Below are positions 6,168-27,023 of a stretch of 64,000 nucleotides of DNA, in pieces. Under the pieces are notes generated by a model, which did not search any database, was not told the origin of the DNA, and saw only the letters and a program-made list of their open reading frames with translations. Origin of the DNA: Oopsacas minuta (Eukaryota > Animalia > Porifera); contig JAKMXF010000221.1 in NCBI GenBank assembly GCA_024704765.1, positions 62,001-126,000 of the forward strand, given 5' to 3'. The position numbers were made by a program, and so were the translations under genes. Each line of letters opens with the position of its first letter. Position 1 is the first letter of the stretch.

Positions 6168-6782
6168 CGCATCGGATAATTGCTATCTCTACACTAATTT
6201 GCGCTAGATAATACACGAAAATATTCAAGCAGAAGGAATAGCCACAATATTGTTGCTGTATTTCAGCATTAAGAAGAGTAAACAAAATTAGTTTACTTGT
6301 TCTCGACATTTTGTGCATTAAAATGTCTATCCCATGAAAAATATACCGTAAATTAGTAGTTACTCGGCAGATATTAACGATAGAAAATGCAGGATAATGT
6401 ATTTTAAATATTTTAGGTGTTAATGGATAGATTACAAAATAATTATAAGAAAAACAAAATTATCTGGATTGAAATTCAATCTTGTTTACTGAATTGTAAT
6501 AATTGGCTTAATAGTTAAGGTTTTGAAGAGAAATGAACTCTCAATAATTGGAAGTCATAACACGTTTAGTGACGATTGCCAGCCAACTCTAACCTATTCT
6601 AACCTGCACCAAACCAACTCGCGATAAGCTAACTAGCTACAATTCTAAGTGGTCATAAAGTATATTTTGGGTGAGTGAATGAAGAAATAAGTTATTTGAC
6701 AAAACACAAAGATAGGTTAGGATTAGGTACGAATTGAATGATCCAAGTCGACTGAAGCAATTTGTACAGTAACAATAATTTA

Positions 6783-6928
6783 CAGGGCCGCTGACAGGAT
6801 CGGAGAGGTTCGGGCCGTATTACCCAAATATTGTGATGATTATTCGATGAAATAGAGATTTTTGGAGGCCCTTAGAGCGTGAGGCCCAGGCCAAATAGAG
6901 CGCCTGGCCCCCCTTCTCAGAGGGCCTG
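6783..6928. mobile_element. hAT-type MITE (146 bp)
   Basis: Imperfect TIRs (CAGGGCCGCTGACAGG vs reverse complement CAGGCCCTCTGAGAAG, 12/16) and a perfect 8-bp TSD ATAATTTA at 6775-6782 and 6929-6936. Confidence 0.8.
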
Positions 6929-17483: not shown

Positions 17484-20400
17484 TTAAGCCCAGTACATAA
17501 GGCCCTTCCTGATAAGCATAGGCTTACGTTTCTCATCCCAGTTGTTGTGTTCATCGCTTCCTTCGCTCCTGATGGAAGAGGCATCATCCTCAAAATTAGT
17601 AGAATTCATCGCTCTTAATGCTACCCAGTGAGCGTAATACACTGGTGCTGGTATAGATACAGCCTTGGTGCATCTAGCATACAGATGACATAAATGGTAT
17701 GTCAGAGTCTGTAGAGAGTCTGAATCAAAGTTATTGTCATCCCACAAAACGTGGTAGTGAGTAGGGCGACTTGTTCCTTGCAAACCGAAATGACTACACA
17801 GGTAGAAATCAAATTCAACTGGGTGTGTAACATCTTTGTCTAGGACACAACCTGGAGGAACGTTATTCCCTTTCCCAACAGCACAACCTCTGTCTCGACA
17901 GAACATCCTCAAGTGATGACGTTTCTGGACACAAACAATTGTAATACCAGGCTGGTAGTCAGGTGAGAAACGCCTACATGCTCTCCTCATTGACGTCATC
18001 TCTCTATTGAGGACTGCGCGGAACTGACCCTCAGAAACCCCGTCTCTGTAATAGATAATCCTCTCGGGTAGCCTTCCTTTACAGTTCTCACGGAAAGCTG
18101 AAATCAGTTCATAACACATATCATCAAACTTGTCTATCATCTCCAAACGTTCTTTTTTCTTCGGCATACCATCCACCTGGTTCTTGCTCTCCACAGAACG
18201 ACTGTGTTTCTGGAACCTCACAGAACTAACGTATTTAGCTAGCTTAGAATCAATAGACCCTACAGCTGCAGCTATTGACGGCATAACTTCATCCATACCC
18301 ACGTGTGGATGGTTAACATCAGCTCCTATGAACATGATAGGTTTCTTGAATAGCTCACCAAATGATGTATTACTTGTATCAATATCATGATTAACTCCTC
18401 CTAGCTTAGCGTTAATCTTGAGACAAATGTTAGCAAGAACGCTCTTATTTGCTTTAAATATGTTCTTATCTTTTATGCACTGGGATAGGACGCCAAGATC
18501 TGAATCACATATTCTCTTTATGTGTTTGTACATATCCTTATTAGGGAGAGGATAAGGTTTCTTCTCATTAATAAATAACATAAACATCGTAGGATTGTAC
18601 TTCTTGTGCAGATCATCGAATTCTTTTTCAATTTGACTGATTTTCCTGAAATCGTCATCTTTGCTGTTGATTTGAGGTGATTTGACGGTAAGAGGATCTG
18701 ATATCATGACCCCACTGTTCCTTCCTACATCTTTTAACTCATCTAGGAATTTGTAGAATGTGTCTTCTCGAATGCCAACAAAATCTAGAATCACCCAATT
18801 GTCCAGTTTCATACCATTTTTGAATTTGACTCCCCTGAGATCCCAGGAGCCATCTCTTGGAGAAACCTCTTTATTCTGGTACCGTAATTTGGGTGCATCA
18901 AGTACCCTTCCCTCTGTTTCGTACATCCTGGGGTTTATCTTTATTCCGTAGTAATCGAGTAGAGGAGTAGGTACTAACTCTCTTTTGGCAATATCTTCAG
19001 TATTCCACATCCTTTTATCAGCTGGTTTAGCTGCAGAACGAATCATCTCTGAAGTCTGATCAGCTGTGAGTTTTCCCTTCTTATGTTGTCCTCTTACAAT
19101 AGTACACAGCTCCATTGGTAGTAGTGTAGTACCTTTACTCCCAACAGCAAGAAGTGGGAGATATGGACATTGTAACTTTATCTTGTATTTATTTAAATAA
19201 TACTTCTCGATACTTGTTGTAGAGCCATCTCCTAGATCGAATTTATGCTCACTAGCTGATTTCCCTAGAATTTTACGTTTTTCATTGCTCAGCTTGTACA
19301 CACGATTATATCCCATGTGTCTTGTGCTAACCTTCAACCCACAGAGGTGACTCTTGACTTCACCTAGATTTCTTCCTCTCACTGCATCTTCTGGGTACCG
19401 AGAATTTGTGAGGTCAAGAATGAAATCTATAACATTTGTGTCTTGTATCATAGCTGTGTATGTTACATCAATATTGATGAAAGGTTTCCAAGTCCCTGGC
19501 CTGAGAGATTGGTAGTAGCCTTCCCATATGTCACAACCTTGTCCCAGACTCACTTGGTTATTTCCTGGATCGAAGTAGTGGCTCCTACCAATCGTATTAT
19601 AGCGTGATTTAGGGAGCTGACTGAGTATAACTTCGATTACTTGAATGGCAGATCGACCCAAATCAAATTCAGTCTGTCTGGTCTCAGCTGTTTCATATGG
19701 CTTTTGTCTGTTGATAAATTCCTGCAGTAAAGAGAGATCTACAGAACCAGTGTGCGCTATCTTGACTGTATTGGTACGCTTCCTGCCTCCATCTTCTTCG
19801 TCCTCCCAATCAATCTCGAATTTACGCGGTGATCCATTCCATAGTAGTTCACGAGCATATAGAGTAGCTCTACCATCATATACAGGGTGTTTTCCTTGGA
19901 GTTCAGCTGCATATTTTTTGAGGAGAGCTTTCCACACAGACTTGCATACGTGTTTCTGTATGACTGCTCTTTCATCACCACTAGCCATATTGAATGTTAT
20001 GTCTACACGGTATTGATTGATTAGACTATTTTGAGGAAGTTTCATTTCAAAGAAGTTAATCTTCAGAGGAATTTTCCATCCCAGAGTTCCACACCCTGAC
20101 TGGGGTCTTGCGGGAGGGTAGAGGTTAGACACGGATAGATGGGTACTACTGGTAGCGCTAGAACCCATATGGAAGCCATTAGTTGTGTGTGAAACACTTG
20201 GAGGAGAGCACGAAGTCACTTCTGGAAATCGAGATGCACCAGTCGATTCCTCACTTCCAGTTGACTCAGGTGACGGTACAAGATTAGTGAGGGAAGGTTC
20301 TGGTGAGTTCTCATCTGGAGTAAGAGATAGTATATCAGGAGTAGAATCAGGACTGTCAGATGGTGTTGAAATAGGAGGATGGAAGGGTACAGCAGGAGCA

Positions 20401-20528
20401 GTAGTAGCTCGATCATTGATTCTCATTTCTTTGTAAGAGTCATTGCTTCGTTGTTGAGAACCTCGACCCTTTCCTCTTCCTCCACCACGCCCACGGCCTC
20501 CGCGGCCTCGATTACCTCTGCCAGACAT
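17484..20528 (-). CDS. AGO: Argonaute (AGO clade), intronless, ~1014 aa
   Basis: N, PAZ (IEKYYLNKYKIKLQCPYLP...LPMELC), MID and PIWI motifs: KINAKLGG, GADVNHP, RDGVSEGQF, QKRHH, FYLCSHFGLQGTSRPTHYHVLWDDN, SIPAPVYYAH. ATG at 20528 (MSGRGNRG). Confidence 0.98.
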   Translation of the reverse strand: MSGRGNRGRGGRGRGGGRGKGRGSQQRSNDSYKEMRINDRATTAPAVPFHPPISTPSDSPDSTPDILSLTPDENSPEPSLTNLVPSPESTGSEESTGASRFPEVTSCSPPSVSHTTNGFHMGSSATSSTHLSVSNLYPPARPQSGCGTLGWKIPLKINFFEMKLPQNSLINQYRVDITFNMASGDERAVIQKHVCKSVWKALLKKYAAELQGKHPVYDGRATLYARELLWNGSPRKFEIDWEDEEDGGRKRTNTVKIAHTGSVDLSLLQEFINRQKPYETAETRQTEFDLGRSAIQVIEVILSQLPKSRYNTIGRSHYFDPGNNQVSLGQGCDIWEGYYQSLRPGTWKPFINIDVTYTAMIQDTNVIDFILDLTNSRYPEDAVRGRNLGEVKSHLCGLKVSTRHMGYNRVYKLSNEKRKILGKSASEHKFDLGDGSTTSIEKYYLNKYKIKLQCPYLPLLAVGSKGTTLLPMELCTIVRGQHKKGKLTADQTSEMIRSAAKPADKRMWNTEDIAKRELVPTPLLDYYGIKINPRMYETEGRVLDAPKLRYQNKEVSPRDGSWDLRGVKFKNGMKLDNWVILDFVGIREDTFYKFLDELKDVGRNSGVMISDPLTVKSPQINSKDDDFRKISQIEKEFDDLHKKYNPTMFMLFINEKKPYPLPNKDMYKHIKRICDSDLGVLSQCIKDKNIFKANKSVLANICLKINAKLGGVNHDIDTSNTSFGELFKKPIMFIGADVNHPHVGMDEVMPSIAAAVGSIDSKLAKYVSSVRFQKHSRSVESKNQVDGMPKKKERLEMIDKFDDMCYELISAFRENCKGRLPERIIYYRDGVSEGQFRAVLNREMTSMRRACRRFSPDYQPGITIVCVQKRHHLRMFCRDRGCAVGKGNNVPPGCVLDKDVTHPVEFDFYLCSHFGLQGTSRPTHYHVLWDDNNFDSDSLQTLTYHLCHLYARCTKAVSIPAPVYYAHWVALRAMNSTNFEDDASSIRSEGSDEHNNWDEKRKPMLIRKGLMYWA

Positions 20529-20796
20529 TATTAAAGATAATAAATCTGTAGCTAGTATATAGAACAATTGTTCTAGCTAATAAAGATAATTGTTAAATGA
20601 ATATTTAGATATGACAGGCATATTAAAGGTTTTGAAATGGAAGTAAGACAAGTGTGTCTTTAGTTATATAATTGCATAATACATTGCTGTAACTGTCGTA
20701 TTGCCAAAATTATACAGTATAATACGTATGTAATTTCATATTCTACATATACGTAGTCAGATATCGTTACCTATTTATTGTATTTCACATTATATC

Positions 20797-23700
20797 TTAT
20801 TCATAAGCAACAGAGTAGAGATCTTCACCAATCTCAGATATCAACCTGCTAAAAGAGATATTTTCTAGATTTCCTATAATCGCTATAACAATTCCACTGG
20901 GCACATCCTTGGTACCTTCATGGACACCCTCCTCCCCTCTAGGTAAAATCAGGAGGTAGCTAGATGCTCCAACAGCTCCTCCAGAGTGAAATACAGAAAA
21001 TCTCGCTGACTCATCTTCACTACGAACTCTTAACTGCTCTAAATTTGGCTTTATAAACCAACCTAGACCGATACATACTCCCTTATCATTAGTCTCAGTT
21101 TGACAGGCCCACATTTTCCTAACTATTCCCTGAGACAAAGCATACTCATTACTGCTATCTACTTCCTCTATTCGTTCAGAGGAGAGTTGATACACTCCCT
21201 GATAGAAACCTAACATAGTATTAGCAAACCTAGAGATGTCTAGGACATTAGATAAGAACCCACCTCCCGCCCATTTATATGAGTTATCAACATACGGTGT
21301 GTTTGTAAGCTTGTTACTCTTTCTAACGTAGTTCTTACTCCTATGAGAGAGGATAGGGCTATTCTTATCTTCATGAGTGCTGTATAGCTTATAGGGAGTA
21401 AACACGTTATTATGCATGAAGGTTAGATAAGATTGTTTAGCTGCAGTCTCAATAACAGCACTTAACAGAGTCCATGCGAGTGTTGAGTAGAGATAGCGTG
21501 TGCTAGGGGCGTGAACAAGAGAATCATCCTTGAAGATTTCTAAAGACGATTGGGTATCGGAGAAGTGAGTTTTGTTGTGCCATTCAGATCCCTCTTCCAT
21601 AATTTTAACAATCTATATATGGTTATACATATAAATCTAATATAACAATATGAATATTATGAGTCGTGAATTAACCTTGTGTTTCGAGCTGGCCTTATTA
21701 AACTCATCAGCCTTTATATAGTTTCTTATCCCTGACATGTGTGTCAATATGTGTCTAGTTGTTATAGTAACTTCTTTCTCTTCGAATTTCTTAACAGGAA
21801 ACTCAGGCACATAAGTTTGTATCGGAAGGTCAAAATCTATTTTCCCTCTTTGCCAGAGAAGAGCCATACCCGAGGCAGTGAGAGGCTTACTAATGCTAGC
21901 AATACGCATTACAGTGTTAGGGGTGCACGGGACAAGATTTTCTACGTCAGAATAACCGTAGCCTTTACTCCATATCAGCTTACCGTCTATAGATACCGCT
22001 GCACTGATACCTGGAATACCTGAAGGGAGTATGTGATGGTAAATTTTATATGTACGTATATCGATAAACCATCGAAAAGTTAATAGGTGATATCCAACAC
22101 TCAAACATTAGAATAATTACATATGGTAAACTTCTCTAATCGTTAACTACAAGCACAATACAATTAATGGCAGTGTATGAGAGCATACAATTAATGGCAG
22201 TGTATGAGAGCATACAATTAATGGCAGTGTATGAGAGCATACAAATTAATGGCAGTGTATGAGAGCATACAAATTAATGGCAGTGTATGAGAGCATACAA
22301 ATTTAATCCATTCGTGCTAGAATCCTTAAATTCTAATTACTGTAGGGTTTGAATTTCTAAAAAAATTCCATATATGAAGTTAGATAACTATGTGAGAATT
22401 AATCGTACAATTATCGTTACAAGTGGGACCTACAAAGATCACGATCAACAAACACAAGTATTATTAATATCTGCTATACAATTGTATTAAATAAAATTCC
22501 TTACATGAAATAATTATCTTTGAATAATCTTCAGAGTAGAAATAAATGCAAAAATAGATAAATATAATACAAAGGGGGAATAATTAAACATATTTATAGT
22601 TGCTGAAGCAAGGGTTAATTCCTAAACAGGACTAAAATAGAATTTTCAGATGTTACAAAAGAGGTAATTTCCAAACACTCAAATATTATTATTAGACTTT
22701 TAGTATTGCACTAGTTACCATTGAATTATTAATAAGCGAATAATGTCTAATTATAGAAACTTATTAAGCAACTATATATTCAATTTTTCATTAATCAGTT
22801 TGGGAATTTGGGATGATGTAAGAGGAATAAGATAGTCGATAGAAATAGCTATAGTCAGCCATAATATTGTTGACACCCCTCCTGTGAGAATTAACTAACT
22901 CTTGTGAACAAGAGATAAAATTCAATCTCCATTTAACTCATCAATGGTGTCTATGTTGTAAAACAGAAATAAAATAATTTAGGGGAGTTGCAAATTGATG
23001 AGGTATTAGGCGGTTCCACTGTACCAGCAAAAGTTTCCAGTGATTGCAAAATATTTGAGACGAAAGCGAAAGTTCCGTTTTAATACCTTAATTTAAATAC
23101 CAGACTAGTAAATGATAATATGAGATTTGACACTATAGCAATCAATCAATCGTTTTAATCTTCAATCAATTCTTTCTTGCTCTTCGATATCTTTAGATAT
23201 TTCTTAACCCCAGTTCTATACTTGTTCAAATCTTCCCTCAATTTATCTCTCTTCTCTCTCTTCTTCCTAATTATAATCCTACATAAAGGAGCTATACAAA
23301 CTAAACAGGGCAAATAGAGGAAGAAGCAAGCACCTAGAAACCAATCCACTGTGTTCTCACTAACTTGATGTCTCTTGTGGTACTTGCTTTTGCTTCCAAG
23401 GAAACTGTCTACGAATCTTCGTCTTCTCCGTTCTTTATCTCTACATAAACAATCCTCAACCAACATTTTCAACACACCTAGCGTTAGCAGTAGCGTAATA
23501 ATCGTGACAATAATCTTAACAGGGTCTTGCATCTGTTTGATTAAAAAGCAGATATAACAAGGAGGTCTAACATAAGTAATATTCAGAGAGTATAGACTTT
23601 CTGAAGAAAAACATTCTGATTGTAACATACTCATATCAAGCGAGGTATTAGCAGTGGTATTAGCAGTGGAATTAAGTGGTAGTGTAGGTTTCGTACTCAT

Positions 23701-25778
23701 ACCAGTTTCAGGGGAACATAAACACCCACAAGTAACAGGACAATAACAACTCATCATGGCTGCAAATGTCACCTGTCTACTGTCTGTCACTTTACCTAGA
23801 CTGTCTCTGAGAACAGCTTGACACGAATAGTTAGCATTTATGTCAAGAGTGACAGATACTACAAACTCGACAGTACGTGAATCAGAGGGATTGAGCTCAA
23901 AAGAACGGTCTCCTACAGGTAACACAGCATCATCACAGTTCTCTAGCGATAGCATGAACGTACTAGTAAGGTGACCGCTATTAACTACGGTAACCTTAAC
24001 CTCACCACCCCCTCCAAATGCATGGAAATCCTCTGCATTAGCATCAACAATACGACCAGTAGCAACATTTAGGACATAGCTCACGTTACTAGCTCTGAAC
24101 TCAAGACGTATCTCTGTCGTATGAGTTTCCTGTAGCAAATAACGCAAGTATGTTTTAGAAATCTTTCCATTCTTCTGAGAGACCGTAGATTTTAATTTAC
24201 CGTATGCTGAGGGGAAGTAGATGGGGTTCGTCTTGTTACCCACCGCCCATTTGTCACGTTGCCATATAATGAGAGGAGAGAATTGGAAACAAGAACCCCG
24301 GCTACGGTAACATTTTCTAGGTTGAGATACAAATGCTCTAAACTCAGAACCAAGCTTGTTACAAACATAACTATTCCTCTCGTATCTCGAAGCATCGACT
24401 AGCAACCATTCTCTAGCTCCAGCCTTTACCTGCTTGTGGTTTAGTTGGTTGCTCCGTGGGGTAGGAATAAGCAATATTTTAGAAGACAGGTCAGGTAGTG
24501 TACTGGTCAGGAATAAGCTACCTACACCCTCTACCTTGATGTCAGCAGTAGTTTGCATCAATCTAGATACTCCTATCGCACTAGATAGAGTAGCAGAGTC
24601 CACAGTCTCCCACTTCCCTGTTCCTTTACCGGATCTACGTTGTACCTTAACTTCAATATTATATCTTAACATTGGTGGCCCTGGTTTGTAAACTGAATAC
24701 CATAAGGGGGAATATCTAGGACAGTATGAGATACTACGTTGCCATATCTCATAAGAGGTAAGCTTACGAGAAAATCCCCGTCTATATCTTCTTTGTCCAA
24801 ACCTCTCATCAAATGTGGGGTTGCAACAGAAACCTTTGCTGTTTGGTATCATCTTTCCCTTGAGAGTTTTCTCACCCGGACACATGTCCACATTACACGC
24901 ACTGAGCGGGCTCTTCTTAATTAGTAATGGTTGAGATTCTCTCAATTGATTGTTGACATATTGACGAAGATATTTTAGCGGGTAGTCATAATGCACTGCA
25001 GATTTCCCAACAATAACTCTATACGGATCTAGGAGTCTTATCGATTCTCCGGTTTCATCTTTTGTATCTCTGATGTGGACCATTAGACGAGAGCCTTTAG
25101 CATTGTTAGATTTAACAGCTAGTACTATTACAAATGTGGATTTACAATCGTCAGTAGAAACAGTCATTGAGGAAGTACGTCTGTTGCATATTTGTACCTG
25201 ACTGTTGGAGATGATAGAACAGATGATTGGGTTAAGATATGTAATCAATAAGATAAGTAAGAAGTAAGAACGAGTAATATTATAACTCATTTGTTAAAAT
25301 TATAAGCTATCATGCAAATATTATGTAAATATTGAGAATAAGAAATAATTTATGAAAACTAACCGTGTTTTTCTTTGAATACCAGAAGTTTTTGATTGGT
25401 TCGTTTCAGTGCTTCTTTCAGCTCTTTTGATAGAGTATCTCTCTTTGGAAGAGAATTTACTGGTCTCTGTTTATTATGGAATTCAGTTTTATCAACCTTA
25501 TCAAGACAAGATGCAACTTGTAATGGCATCTCTCCCTGAAAAAATATTACCTCAATCTCTTTCTTTTTGAAATAGAATAATGCGGCTAATAATCCACAAA
25601 CTATCCCTAGGATAGGAGATACAGGATTGTACCTATTGCTTGACTCTTCATTTTCATTTTGAGAGAATTTCCTCTGTGTAATAATTGGATTATTTTTCAA
25701 AGAGACTGTTTGTGTGAGAATTCTGTAATTTGCTGATGATATATTTATATGAGGTGATAGCTTGGAGTAAACAAACAT
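20797..25778 (-). CDS. LACTB: Serine beta-lactamase-like protein LACTB (mitochondrial); exons 25778-25364, 22019-21676, 21611-20797
   Basis: The phase-1 intron 25363-22020 (GTTAGT...CTTCAG) joins ...KLLVFKEKH|G|IPGISAAVSIDGK..., matching LACTB ...IKDEVGAPGIVVGVSVDGK. SxxK (ASISK), YST and HSG motifs are present. Confidence 0.93.
22158..22302. repeat. Tandem minisatellite, five copies of a 27-28 bp unit
   Basis: Unit CA(A)ATTAATGGCAGTGTATGAGAGCATA repeated head-to-tail with no spacers. Confidence 0.95.
23155..25290 (-). CDS. HAP2: HAP2/GCS1 gamete fusogen (class II fusexin), intronless, 711 aa
   Basis: Signal peptide; SKGFCC; YCPRYSPLWYSVY; WLLVD...CNKLGSEFRAFVSQPRKCYRSRGSC (HAP2-GCS1 domain); Ig-like domain III (VTVVNSGHLTSTFMLSLENC); TM helix followed by a basic, Cys-rich tail. 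Confidence 0.9.
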   Translation of the reverse strand: MSYNITRSYFLLILLITYLNPIICSIISNSQVQICNRRTSSMTVSTDDCKSTFVIVLAVKSNNAKGSRLMVHIRDTKDETGESIRLLDPYRVIVGKSAVHYDYPLKYLRQYVNNQLRESQPLLIKKSPLSACNVDMCPGEKTLKGKMIPNSKGFCCNPTFDERFGQRRYRRGFSRKLTSYEIWQRSISYCPRYSPLWYSVYKPGPPMLRYNIEVKVQRRSGKGTGKWETVDSATLSSAIGVSRLMQTTADIKVEGVGSLFLTSTLPDLSSKILLIPTPRSNQLNHKQVKAGAREWLLVDASRYERNSYVCNKLGSEFRAFVSQPRKCYRSRGSCFQFSPLIIWQRDKWAVGNKTNPIYFPSAYGKLKSTVSQKNGKISKTYLRYLLQETHTTEIRLEFRASNVSYVLNVATGRIVDANAEDFHAFGGGGEVKVTVVNSGHLTSTFMLSLENCDDAVLPVGDRSFELNPSDSRTVEFVVSVTLDINANYSCQAVLRDSLGKVTDSRQVTFAAMMSCYCPVTCGCLCSPETGMSTKPTLPLNSTANTTANTSLDMSMLQSECFSSESLYSLNITYVRPPCYICFLIKQMQDPVKIIVTIITLLLTLGVLKMLVEDCLCRDKERRRRRFVDSFLGSKSKYHKRHQVSENTVDWFLGACFFLYLPCLVCIAPLCRIIIRKKREKRDKLREDLNKYRTGVKKYLKISKSKKELIED

Positions 25779-25871
25779 CTAAAACATAATTAAGTAGAAT
25801 TGTAGATTAAATAAATTTCGAAATTTTATACCTGAAGAAGAAATGATAAATAACTAGAAAAGAACAAAATA

Positions 25872-26111
25872 TTATTTTAATTTTTTTATTCTTTCTTCTT
25901 CTTCCGTCCAATCTTTGGGACATGGTTTGAGCCCTTCAGTTCTTCTCTCAGATTTAACTTTATTCATCAATTTCTTACACTCCCTGTATGCACGGAAATA
26001 TTTCTGACATTTTGATGGATCATAATTTGATTTAGACATACAGTTGTAAGATGCTTGGGCTTCTTCAGCACACGGGTTATTCCTGGGATCATTGAGTCTG
26101 TTACTATTCAT
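25872..26111 (-). CDS. CHCHD7: Twin CX9C protein CHCHD7/COX23
   Basis: LNDPRNNPCAEEAQASYNCMSKSNYDPSKCQKYFRAYRECKK...RRTEGLKP. Confidence 0.9.
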   Translation of the reverse strand: MNSNRLNDPRNNPCAEEAQASYNCMSKSNYDPSKCQKYFRAYRECKKLMNKVKSERRTEGLKPCPKDWTEEEERIKKLK

Positions 26112-26409
26112 TTAATCCAACTACTAGAAGTGTAACTAGTATGGAAAATTGATAATATTCTTTCATAGCCTACCTCAACTCACATTACTCTTACTATGTT
26201 TTGCATGTCCGTCGTGTTTTAGCTTAGGTCTTATGTTGCACTTTGACACGATTACGCACTTACCAAATATTTGCGTTGTAGTATCTACTAGCAATCATAT
26301 TTTAGTATCCTGGCCTGACCGCTCACCTTTTATGGGCTTCCGCCTTCCGAGTTCCGACGGCACTTCATACATCTACCATGATTATTTTGATTATATAACT
26401 AGCTTATTG

Positions 26410-26814
26410 CGATCAATGATCGCAGGATCACGATCGTTATCTATTTTTGACGATCGGAAGATGATCCATCGCTGATCTTTCTATAAACAGTAATCGAATG
26501 GAAGATCGCGATCATTTTTCCCGAAAAAAATTCCATCATATTTTCGATCGTTTTAAGCAGACATTATTTTACATTCGCGAATCTAGATGCCAAAATGTAT
26601 AATTGTATTTACTAATTTTCATGGTAATCGGACTGGTATATTTCGCATGGCCGCGCGGACGGACGGATGCACGTGACAGAACATCTACCTATTTGAGGTG
26701 CTTATTAATTTCATAAAAGTGATCGTGAACGGAATCGCGATCTCCGGTCATTTTTTAATGAACGATTGTGATCATGATCGCGATCATTAATTTGGTGATC
26801 AACTAATGCCCACT
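26410..26814. mobile_element. GATC(G)-rich degenerate foldback/MITE-like element
   Basis: Dense GATC/GATCG motifs. The left end AATGATCGC..GATCACGATCGTT mirrors the reverse complement of the right end (AATGATCGC...GATCACAATCGTT). Confidence 0.45.
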
Positions 26815-26868
26815 TATTCTGGTATGTTTAAGATAAGTTAGGCCCCAGATTTCATTTTGTCTTGTTGG

Positions 26869-27023
26869 TAGAGGGGCCGTATGGATTACGGATAATGGAT
26901 GTCATGATTATAATCCTTAAAATTCATAATCCATTTGGGATGGATTTGTATTTACAAGGCAAGGGCGGGGGTACAACCCCATATCCATTTGGATTATGAT
27001 TTTAATCCATCCGGCCCCCTCTG
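26869..27023. mobile_element. hAT-type MITE (155 bp)
   Basis: TIRs TAGAGGGGCCGTATGGATTA vs reverse complement CAGAGGGGGCCGGATGGATTA; 8-bp TSD CTTGTTGG / CTCGTTGG (7/8). Confidence 0.75.

Follow-up and report, generated by a model that had tools for sequence, protein, structure and literature searches.

A HAP2/GCS1 gene nested on the same strand in the first intron of LACTB: a conserved arrangement in glass sponges

The locus and the data

In Oopsacas minuta, a glass sponge, a 64,000-nucleotide (nt) stretch of contig JAKMXF010000221.1 (hereafter the window, whose numbering is used for all coordinates) encodes on its minus strand both LACTB, a protein of the beta-lactamase fold, and a member of HAP2/GCS1, the gamete fusogens that belong to the class II fusion proteins (PMC5332557). 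The whole of HAP2 falls between two exons that splicing brings together in the LACTB mRNA, which makes it a nested gene. The initial annotation of this stretch, made from the sequence alone, had proposed that LACTB exon 1, ending at 25364, is spliced to 22019, and that the intervening 3344-bp intron holds a complete, intronless HAP2 of 711 amino acids (aa) on the same strand, with its ATG 73 bp past the donor. Both parts of this proposal are borne out, and the structural conclusion, LACTB spliced over a complete same-strand HAP2, is in our view close to certain.

Five public sequencing runs contain the locus. One of them, X4, was taken as RNA because it displays TruSeq adapters, very uneven depth and spliced joints; this agrees with the data types of the O. 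minuta genome paper, namely Illumina RNA-seq, DNA-seq, mate pairs and PacBio, each extraction having used one adult (PMC10280926). X1 (Nextera adapters) and X3 (a single 9.7-kb contig at the locus) behave as DNA. The transcript evidence presented here comes from the contigs assembled for a single RNA run of one adult, and statements on spliced leaders rest on the 14 of 45 loose contig ends that are listed for X4. The comparative material (L001-L008) includes seven further loci with the same order from six other hexactinellid-like assemblies, five of these assemblies having the full layout.

LACTB is spliced across a 3344-nt intron

LACTB consists of three exons. Exon 1 (25364..25778) contains an open reading frame (ORF) of 138 codons and one further base, the first of a Gly codon that the intron splits, and ends in CAC G/GTTAGT (the slash marks the splice site); its residues make up the N-terminal presequence, a hydrophobic segment and a helix directly before the beta-lactamase fold. 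Intron 1 (22020..25363) is 3344 nt long, in phase 1 and bounded by GT..AG. Exon 2 (21676..22019), which follows CTTCAG/ and opens with GT ATT CCA, encodes the start of the beta-lactamase fold with the SISK form of the SxxK motif (Pfam PF00144, E 3.9e-29) and is flanked by X4 joints on both sides. Intron 2 (21613..21675) measures 63 nt, and exon 3 (20797..21612, stop codon included) carries the YST and HSGG motifs.

The evidence for the first junction is an X4 contig that skips 3344 nt with GT..AG borders on the minus strand at a depth of 546; it is recorded as 22017>25362 with a cut of +2, which equals 22019/25364. This is the very junction that the initial annotation had named as a check on its model. 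The depth of the exon-1 contig (537) and those of the joints over intron 1 (546) and intron 2 (553) are alike, and essentially all LACTB mRNA uses the 25364/22019 junction. Joined together, the three exons give 1575 nt that encode 524 aa in frame with the SISK, YST and HSGG motifs present; the outcome of splicing is a protein with intact catalytic motifs, whose N-terminal extension is contiguous with the catalytic domain in the mRNA.

Homology supports the same boundaries. In BLASTP comparisons of the spliced protein with the LACTB proteins of spider, millipede, human, scallop and nematode, the alignment is unbroken across residue 139, the position of the junction; it begins at residues 105-125 and includes the last 25-35 residues of exon 1. 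Exon 1 alone recovered only chance TRPV matches in the PDB and, among 1.84 billion representative sequences, exclusively the exon-1 ORFs of other hexactinellids, so that its assignment to LACTB is made on the RNA joint and the alignment of the spliced protein. PF00144 is matched on exons 2 and 3, named LACTB proteins are the top matches outside sponges, and a PDB search with exon 3 retrieved human LACTB chains (structure 7ulw) at E 1.6e-40 versus 5.6e-05 for the next family. Judged by its fold and the SxxK, YxT/N and HxG motifs, the spliced gene is LACTB, the serine beta-lactamase-like protease, rather than another PF00144 protein; a mitochondrial location is predicted.

HAP2 is complete, intronless and under purifying selection

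The HAP2/GCS1 gene (23155..25290) is a single exon of 711 codons with an X4 depth of 1210-1636. Its product matches Pfam PF10699 at 272.6 bits (cut-off 27.4; E 7.8e-81) over profile positions 3-468 of 515, and has the layout of a signal peptide, an ectodomain, a transmembrane helix and a Cys-rich basic tail. A type I membrane topology can be read from the sequence, given the hydrophobic N-terminus kept in the orthologs and the segment IIVTIITLLLTLGVLKMLV ahead of the basic tail. The orthologs in the other assemblies are 69-73% identical with matching N-termini, and the ratio of non-synonymous to synonymous substitution rates (dN/dS) lies at 0.03-0.17, synonymous sites having reached saturation between the window and the other lineages; these values indicate that HAP2 is under purifying selection. 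We found no public record of the exact 711-aa product.

The cytoplasmic tail has a peculiarity of its own: at residues ~615-680 (window 23353-23394 and surroundings) a 60-residue block, EDCLCRDKERRRRRFVDSFLGSKSKYHKRHQVSENTVDWFLGACFFLYLPCLVCIAPLCR, hardly varies among five lineages. Within it lies a second hydrophobic, Cys-rich segment, and nowhere in the gene are synonymous sites more strongly conserved (up to 87.5%).

Public gene models of the locus

Both public O. minuta models at 20797-26300 are wrong, one being a chimera and the other truncated. The first, P0001 ('HAPLESS 2-like', 813 aa), combines two dubious 5' mini-exons that straddle a CHCH gene with LACTB exon 1 and a HAP2 devoid of its signal peptide, the last two being joined from the donor at 25364 to an AG inside the HAP2 ORF (25125/25124). 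The second, P0011 (LOD99_2601), presents LACTB cut to 349 of its 524 aa with the start placed at an internal Met of exon 2. HAP2, nested genes and trans-splicing are all absent from the O. minuta genome paper (PMC10280926), and the HAP2/LACTB pair is mentioned in neither of the two glass-sponge genome papers (PMC10282587, PMC10280926).

The arrangement is conserved among hexactinellids

In the synteny comparison with related species that the initial annotation had suggested, the same gene order recurs in all six other assemblies. At L001-L005 the order is the CHCH gene (where present), an exon-1-like ORF, HAP2, the beta-lactamase exons, Argonaute and LTV1. L006 and L008, which represent one further species, share with them the CHCH gene, the exon-1 ORF and the donor, and in L008 a HAP2 call stands adjacent; L007 displays the same gene order and contributes this order only. 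ORFs homologous to exon 1 thus lie upstream of HAP2 in L001-L006 and L008. In the five lineages checked, the donor CACG/GTTRGT and the acceptor YAG/G split the Gly codon identically; the orthologous intron 1 spans 3017-3793 nt and the gap from donor to HAP2 ATG 56-85 nt in the lineages checked. The conserved order, splice sites and dN/dS values together imply that the arrangement is old and that both genes have been maintained.

At L003 an extra fragment (6746-6847) upstream of exon 1 shares 66% identity with LACTB residues 180-214 and probably represents a pseudo-exon or what is left of a duplication.

HAP2 RNA: abundance and ends

The HAP2 contigs in X4 have depths of 1210-1636, i.e. 2-3 times those of LACTB (537-553). 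As exon 1 is no deeper than the remainder of LACTB while HAP2 is 2-3 times deeper, there must be abundant HAP2 RNA that lacks exon 1. A guest mRNA that includes the first exon of its host is accordingly not what is seen here, exon 1 standing at 537-546 against 1210-1636 for HAP2. Moreover, the X4 junction contig extends 67 nt into exon 1 with no branch at the donor; together with the equal depths of exon 1 and LACTB, this places the 5' end of HAP2 RNA within ~100 nt of its ATG. No contig joining exon 1 to any acceptor before or inside HAP2 was found among the X4 contigs, in which minor isoforms may be missed, and a protein search with the N-terminal 80 aa of HAP2, aimed at partial ORFs of RNA contigs, returned no matches. 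These data lend no support to the suggestion of the initial annotation that one transcription unit switches by RNA processing between LACTB and HAP2: the HAP2 RNA is without exon 1 and 2-3 times deeper, and a joint from exon 1 to HAP2 is absent among the X4 contigs.

At the other end, X4 depth exceeds 900 in the bin 23092-23275, falls to 79 just past the HAP2 stop and to 5-16 further into the intron; hence HAP2 RNA ends shortly after the stop codon. Two ATTAAA hexamers are likely poly(A) signals there, one at 23154..23159, overlapping the stop, and a second 75 nt on at 23079-23084. Both ends of HAP2 RNA are thus placed by depth, though not to the exact nucleotide.

That HAP2 RNA is 2-3 times deeper than that of housekeeping LACTB in a whole adult of a syncytial, embryo-brooding animal is an observation in its own right. 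Adults of O. minuta brood embryos all year (PMC10280926), and the syncytia of the embryos are described as arising by blastomere fusion (Leys 2006, as cited in PMC10280926). It is conceivable that HAP2 acts in somatic or embryonic fusion; our literature search returned no paper that connects HAP2 with glass sponges or with their syncytia. Robust HAP2 RNA in a syncytial animal with embryonic blastomere fusion constitutes a separate lead.

Spliced leader and gene spacing

Identical non-genomic stretches of 18-20 letters stand at the 5' ends of LACTB (25780) and of the upstream CHCH/CMC4-like gene (26137) in two X4 contigs. In mRNA sense the 3' part of this leader reads AATCTTCATAAAAAACTTAC and is followed by AG; it is also written ...AATCTTCATAAAAAACTTACAG, and it is not encoded within the window. 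The acceptor on LACTB is the AG at 25779..25780 (minus strand), 0-2 nt before the ATG, where an X4 contig has its loose end at 25780; that on the CHCH gene is the AG at 26136-26137. This is spliced-leader trans-splicing, a process already known in hexactinellids (PMC10282587; PMC7986045), in which operons are unreported (PMC7986045). No spliced leader was found at HAP2 among the loose ends listed. A kinship between the leader and the donor motif described below, suggested by the common 8-mer TTCATAAA, was discarded as coincidence, as this 8-mer occurs 11 times in the window against 6 expected.

The spacers between the genes are short, with 93 nt from the CHCH stop to the LACTB ATG and ~230 nt from the LACTB stop to the Argonaute ORF. 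Across ~25 kb (1443-26111) almost every large ORF is on the minus strand; beside CHCH and LACTB/HAP2, these include LTV1, a 1461-aa ORF and an intronless Argonaute of 1027 aa whose N-terminus is RGG-rich, among others. Short spacers and a single strand lend the cluster an operon-like look in a trans-splicing organism.

The donor-proximal region

The gap from the LACTB donor to the HAP2 ATG (25291..25363, minus strand) is 73 nt long, has a single AG outside the donor, at 25308-25307, and an in-frame TAA 3 nt before the ATG. Three features set the boundary apart. First, the donor is followed by a motif, GTTAGTTTTCATAAA at 25349..25363, whose form GTTRGTTT(T)CATA is kept in 6 of 7 lineages; it covers the first 13-15 bases of the intron, well beyond what a donor requires, and its 11-mer is unique in the window. 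It may be a candidate initiator or start site of HAP2, or else an intronic splicing enhancer. Second, the last 10 codons of exon 1 retain 83% of synonymous codons, compared with 56-59% elsewhere in LACTB and a mean of 52% in HAP2, where merely 0.7% of 10-codon windows reach 83%. Third, the gap holds fewer AG dinucleotides across lineages than expected (8 versus 17.7, Poisson 0.008), and L004 has none at all; this depletion argues against a conserved leader acceptor in the gap.

How the two mRNAs are probably made

Taken as a whole, the locus is probably best explained by a nested, independent HAP2 with a start site of its own. The position of that start site, just downstream of the LACTB donor, is on balance likely, because the synonymous conservation, the donor-proximal motif and the AG depletion point there in conjunction with the depth data. 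In the scheme we propose, LACTB mRNA, as the RNA contigs show, receives its leader at the AG directly before the ATG and is then cis-spliced from 25364 to 22019 over HAP2, and again over the 63-nt intron. HAP2 transcription would start at the conserved TTT(T)CATA motif, with a putative core promoter that overlaps the last codons of LACTB exon 1. Transcripts begun upstream would carry the donor and be spliced over HAP2, while those begun just past the donor could not be cis-spliced and would yield HAP2 mRNA, ending at the ATTAAA signals inside the LACTB intron. The two genes would thus be physically interleaved and might interfere with each other, rather than forming one switching unit. The initial annotation had objected that 73 bp leave HAP2 no room for a promoter of its own. 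This argument is weak: since neighboring genes here are separated by 93 and ~230 nt, overlap of regulatory sequence with the upstream gene is normal.

Several points weigh against this reading. The motif and the synonymous constraint could serve the splicing of an unusually long LACTB intron instead of HAP2 initiation, and the boundary signals could reflect avoidance of cryptic acceptors for short introns. The AG-depletion test is weak in that it treats related lineages as independent; minor isoforms are lost from assembler contigs, whose depth measures abundance no more than roughly. Finally, a leader added at the AG at 25308-25307 is still compatible with the data, the HAP2 5' end being placed by depth and 14 of 45 loose ends being listed.

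This last point leads to the most viable alternative, that a shared precursor from the LACTB promoter is either cis-spliced to give LACTB, or trans-spliced to a leader before the HAP2 ATG and polyadenylated after HAP2, amounting to an operon inside an intron. We hold it to be possible but rather doubtful. Trans-splicing does operate at the locus, on LACTB and CHCH, and is known from hexactinellids at large (PMC10282587; PMC7986045); the AG at 25308-25307 follows an AT/pyrimidine-rich tract and lies 16 nt before the HAP2 ATG; HAP2 RNA without exon 1 is what a trans-spliced product would look like; and the genes from ~1.4 kb to 26.1 kb are almost all on one strand with short spacers. Yet the listed loose ends include no HAP2 leader, and operons are, as noted, unreported in these sponges (PMC7986045). 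The position of the AG is not conserved, L004 lacking it entirely, within a gap depleted of AG. Further, with HAP2 2-3 times as deep as LACTB, most precursors would need to be diverted. A donor 56 nt upstream would in addition favor cis-splicing to this AG, and such a joint is absent among the X4 contigs; in C. elegans, Conrad and Blumenthal reportedly found that an acceptor with an upstream donor in the same RNA is cis-spliced rather than trans-spliced. The specific corollary, that each pre-mRNA started at the LACTB promoter ends up as the message of one of the two, the mitochondrial protease or, through trans-splicing and intronic polyadenylation, the fusogen, appears unlikely, slightly more so than the shared precursor itself.

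A bicistronic RNA, made by cis-splicing of the exon 1 donor to the AG at 25307 and relying on reinitiation for the translation of HAP2, is very improbable. The sequence would allow it, as the join CAC G/CT TAT AAT TTT AAC AAA TGA ends the exon-1 ORF in a TGA overlapping the HAP2 ATG (ATGA), and the 56-nt intron so created is near intron 2 (63 nt) in size. Against this, the joint is missing among the X4 contigs, exon 1 is as deep as LACTB and thus 2-3 times below HAP2, the AG is not conserved, and reinitiation after an ORF of 145 codons is generally inefficient. Still less credible is a fusion protein of LACTB exon 1 and HAP2 as modeled in P0001: the NCBI model exists and its join is in frame, but it removes the signal peptide conserved in all HAP2 orthologs, it occurs in no RNA contig, the 25364/22019 joint matches the remainder of LACTB in depth, and exon 1 is homologous to the LACTB N-terminus. 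A misassembly, which the initial annotation had itself raised, or two unrelated genes with exon 1 outside LACTB, can be practically dismissed, nothing having been found in favor of either, in light of the RNA joint, the homology across the junction, the conserved order elsewhere and the single X3 DNA contig that continuously covers the whole stretch, save for a 110-nt copy-number difference in a tandem repeat.

Other features of the intron and its surroundings

The rest of intron 1 (22020..23153, minus strand) is AT-rich and non-coding with an X4 depth of 5-79; 1135 nt of such DNA separate the HAP2 ORF from exon 2. It harbors a 27-nt tandem repeat of 5.2 copies at 22158-22300, where the X3 contig is shorter by 110 nt (~4 units), representing either a copy-number polymorphism or an assembly difference. 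An Rfam search over 20000-27000 returned no credible match, which leaves the intron free of snoRNAs and other known RNAs. In the three closest relatives (L001, L003 and L004), and in these alone, a conserved non-coding block, GTAGTGACTGGAAT...CTGCCCATGCCCGACAC...AATAAGTTTAAATAAGCTTCTAATTATA, is located ~120-230 nt after the HAP2 stop; the window has no clear counterpart of the block at the same place, and a similar AATAAGTTTCTATAATTAG is present ~390 nt after the stop.

Run X5, from another study (organism B), contributes low-depth, DNA-like contigs on 20717-22134, 23014-24162 and 25431-25712, which are 95-99% identical to the window with small indels in the introns. They point to the presence in that study of either a close relative of O. 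minuta or a divergent population of the species.

Implications

The structure described here corrects the public record for a key gene of sexual reproduction in the first glass sponge genome, and provides an RNA-supported, conserved case of same-strand nesting with 73 nt between the donor of the host and the start codon of the guest. The locus is therefore well suited to testing how, in a compact genome that uses trans-splicing, the splicing, initiation and polyadenylation of interleaved genes are kept separate. Were the shared precursor to prove true, it would extend operon-like expression to sponges, as the first polycistronic unit in a sponge, and could offer a general explanation for same-strand, intronless guests of first introns in this genome.

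Comparison with known systems

The HAP2 of the window shares with the HAP2/GCS1 proteins of other animals, plants and protists the full-length match to the family profile, the signal peptide, the single transmembrane helix and the cytoplasmic tail. It differs from them in that the glass-sponge gene is intronless and the tail block is Cys-rich and hydrophobic; the role as a fusogen is here a prediction from sequence.

In its architecture the locus recalls the cholinergic locus, where the intronless VAChT/unc-17 lies on the same strand in the first intron of ChAT/cha-1, the mRNAs have a common 5' non-coding exon and promoter, and the products act in one pathway. Both cases feature an intronless guest that follows directly on exon 1 within the first intron of its host, has the same orientation as the host and is conserved over long evolutionary distances. 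At the sponge locus, in contrast, exon 1 is coding, HAP2 RNA is devoid of it, and the two proteins have no known functional link.

The spliced-leader operons of nematodes, tunicates and flatworms (PMC7986045) offer a second parallel, with same-strand genes, very short spacers and a leader on two genes of the cluster. The likeness ends with the inner gene, which sits in an intron rather than after a poly(A) site, and for which we found no polycistronic RNA and no leader among the listed loose ends.

The closest precedents come from the glass sponges themselves. The premise of the initial annotation that same-strand nested genes are rare does not describe these animals, whose genomes have nested genes as a documented hallmark: in Aphrocallistes vastus 2432 genes, or 12.4% of the total, are nested, and many of these are conserved (PMC10282587). 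Like HAP2, these (e.g. the single-exon glassin) can be single-exon guests inside a host intron, conserved between hexactinellids. The far smaller count of 83 in O. minuta was ascribed to the annotation method, with the example of a nested gene annotated as the starting exon of another gene (PMC10282587); automatic annotation has produced a chimera by the same error at HAP2/LACTB. HAP2/LACTB is thus a conserved nested gene of a kind already documented in glass sponges, and as a newly documented pair it adds to that record a defined strand, the 73-nt donor spacing and an RNA junction.

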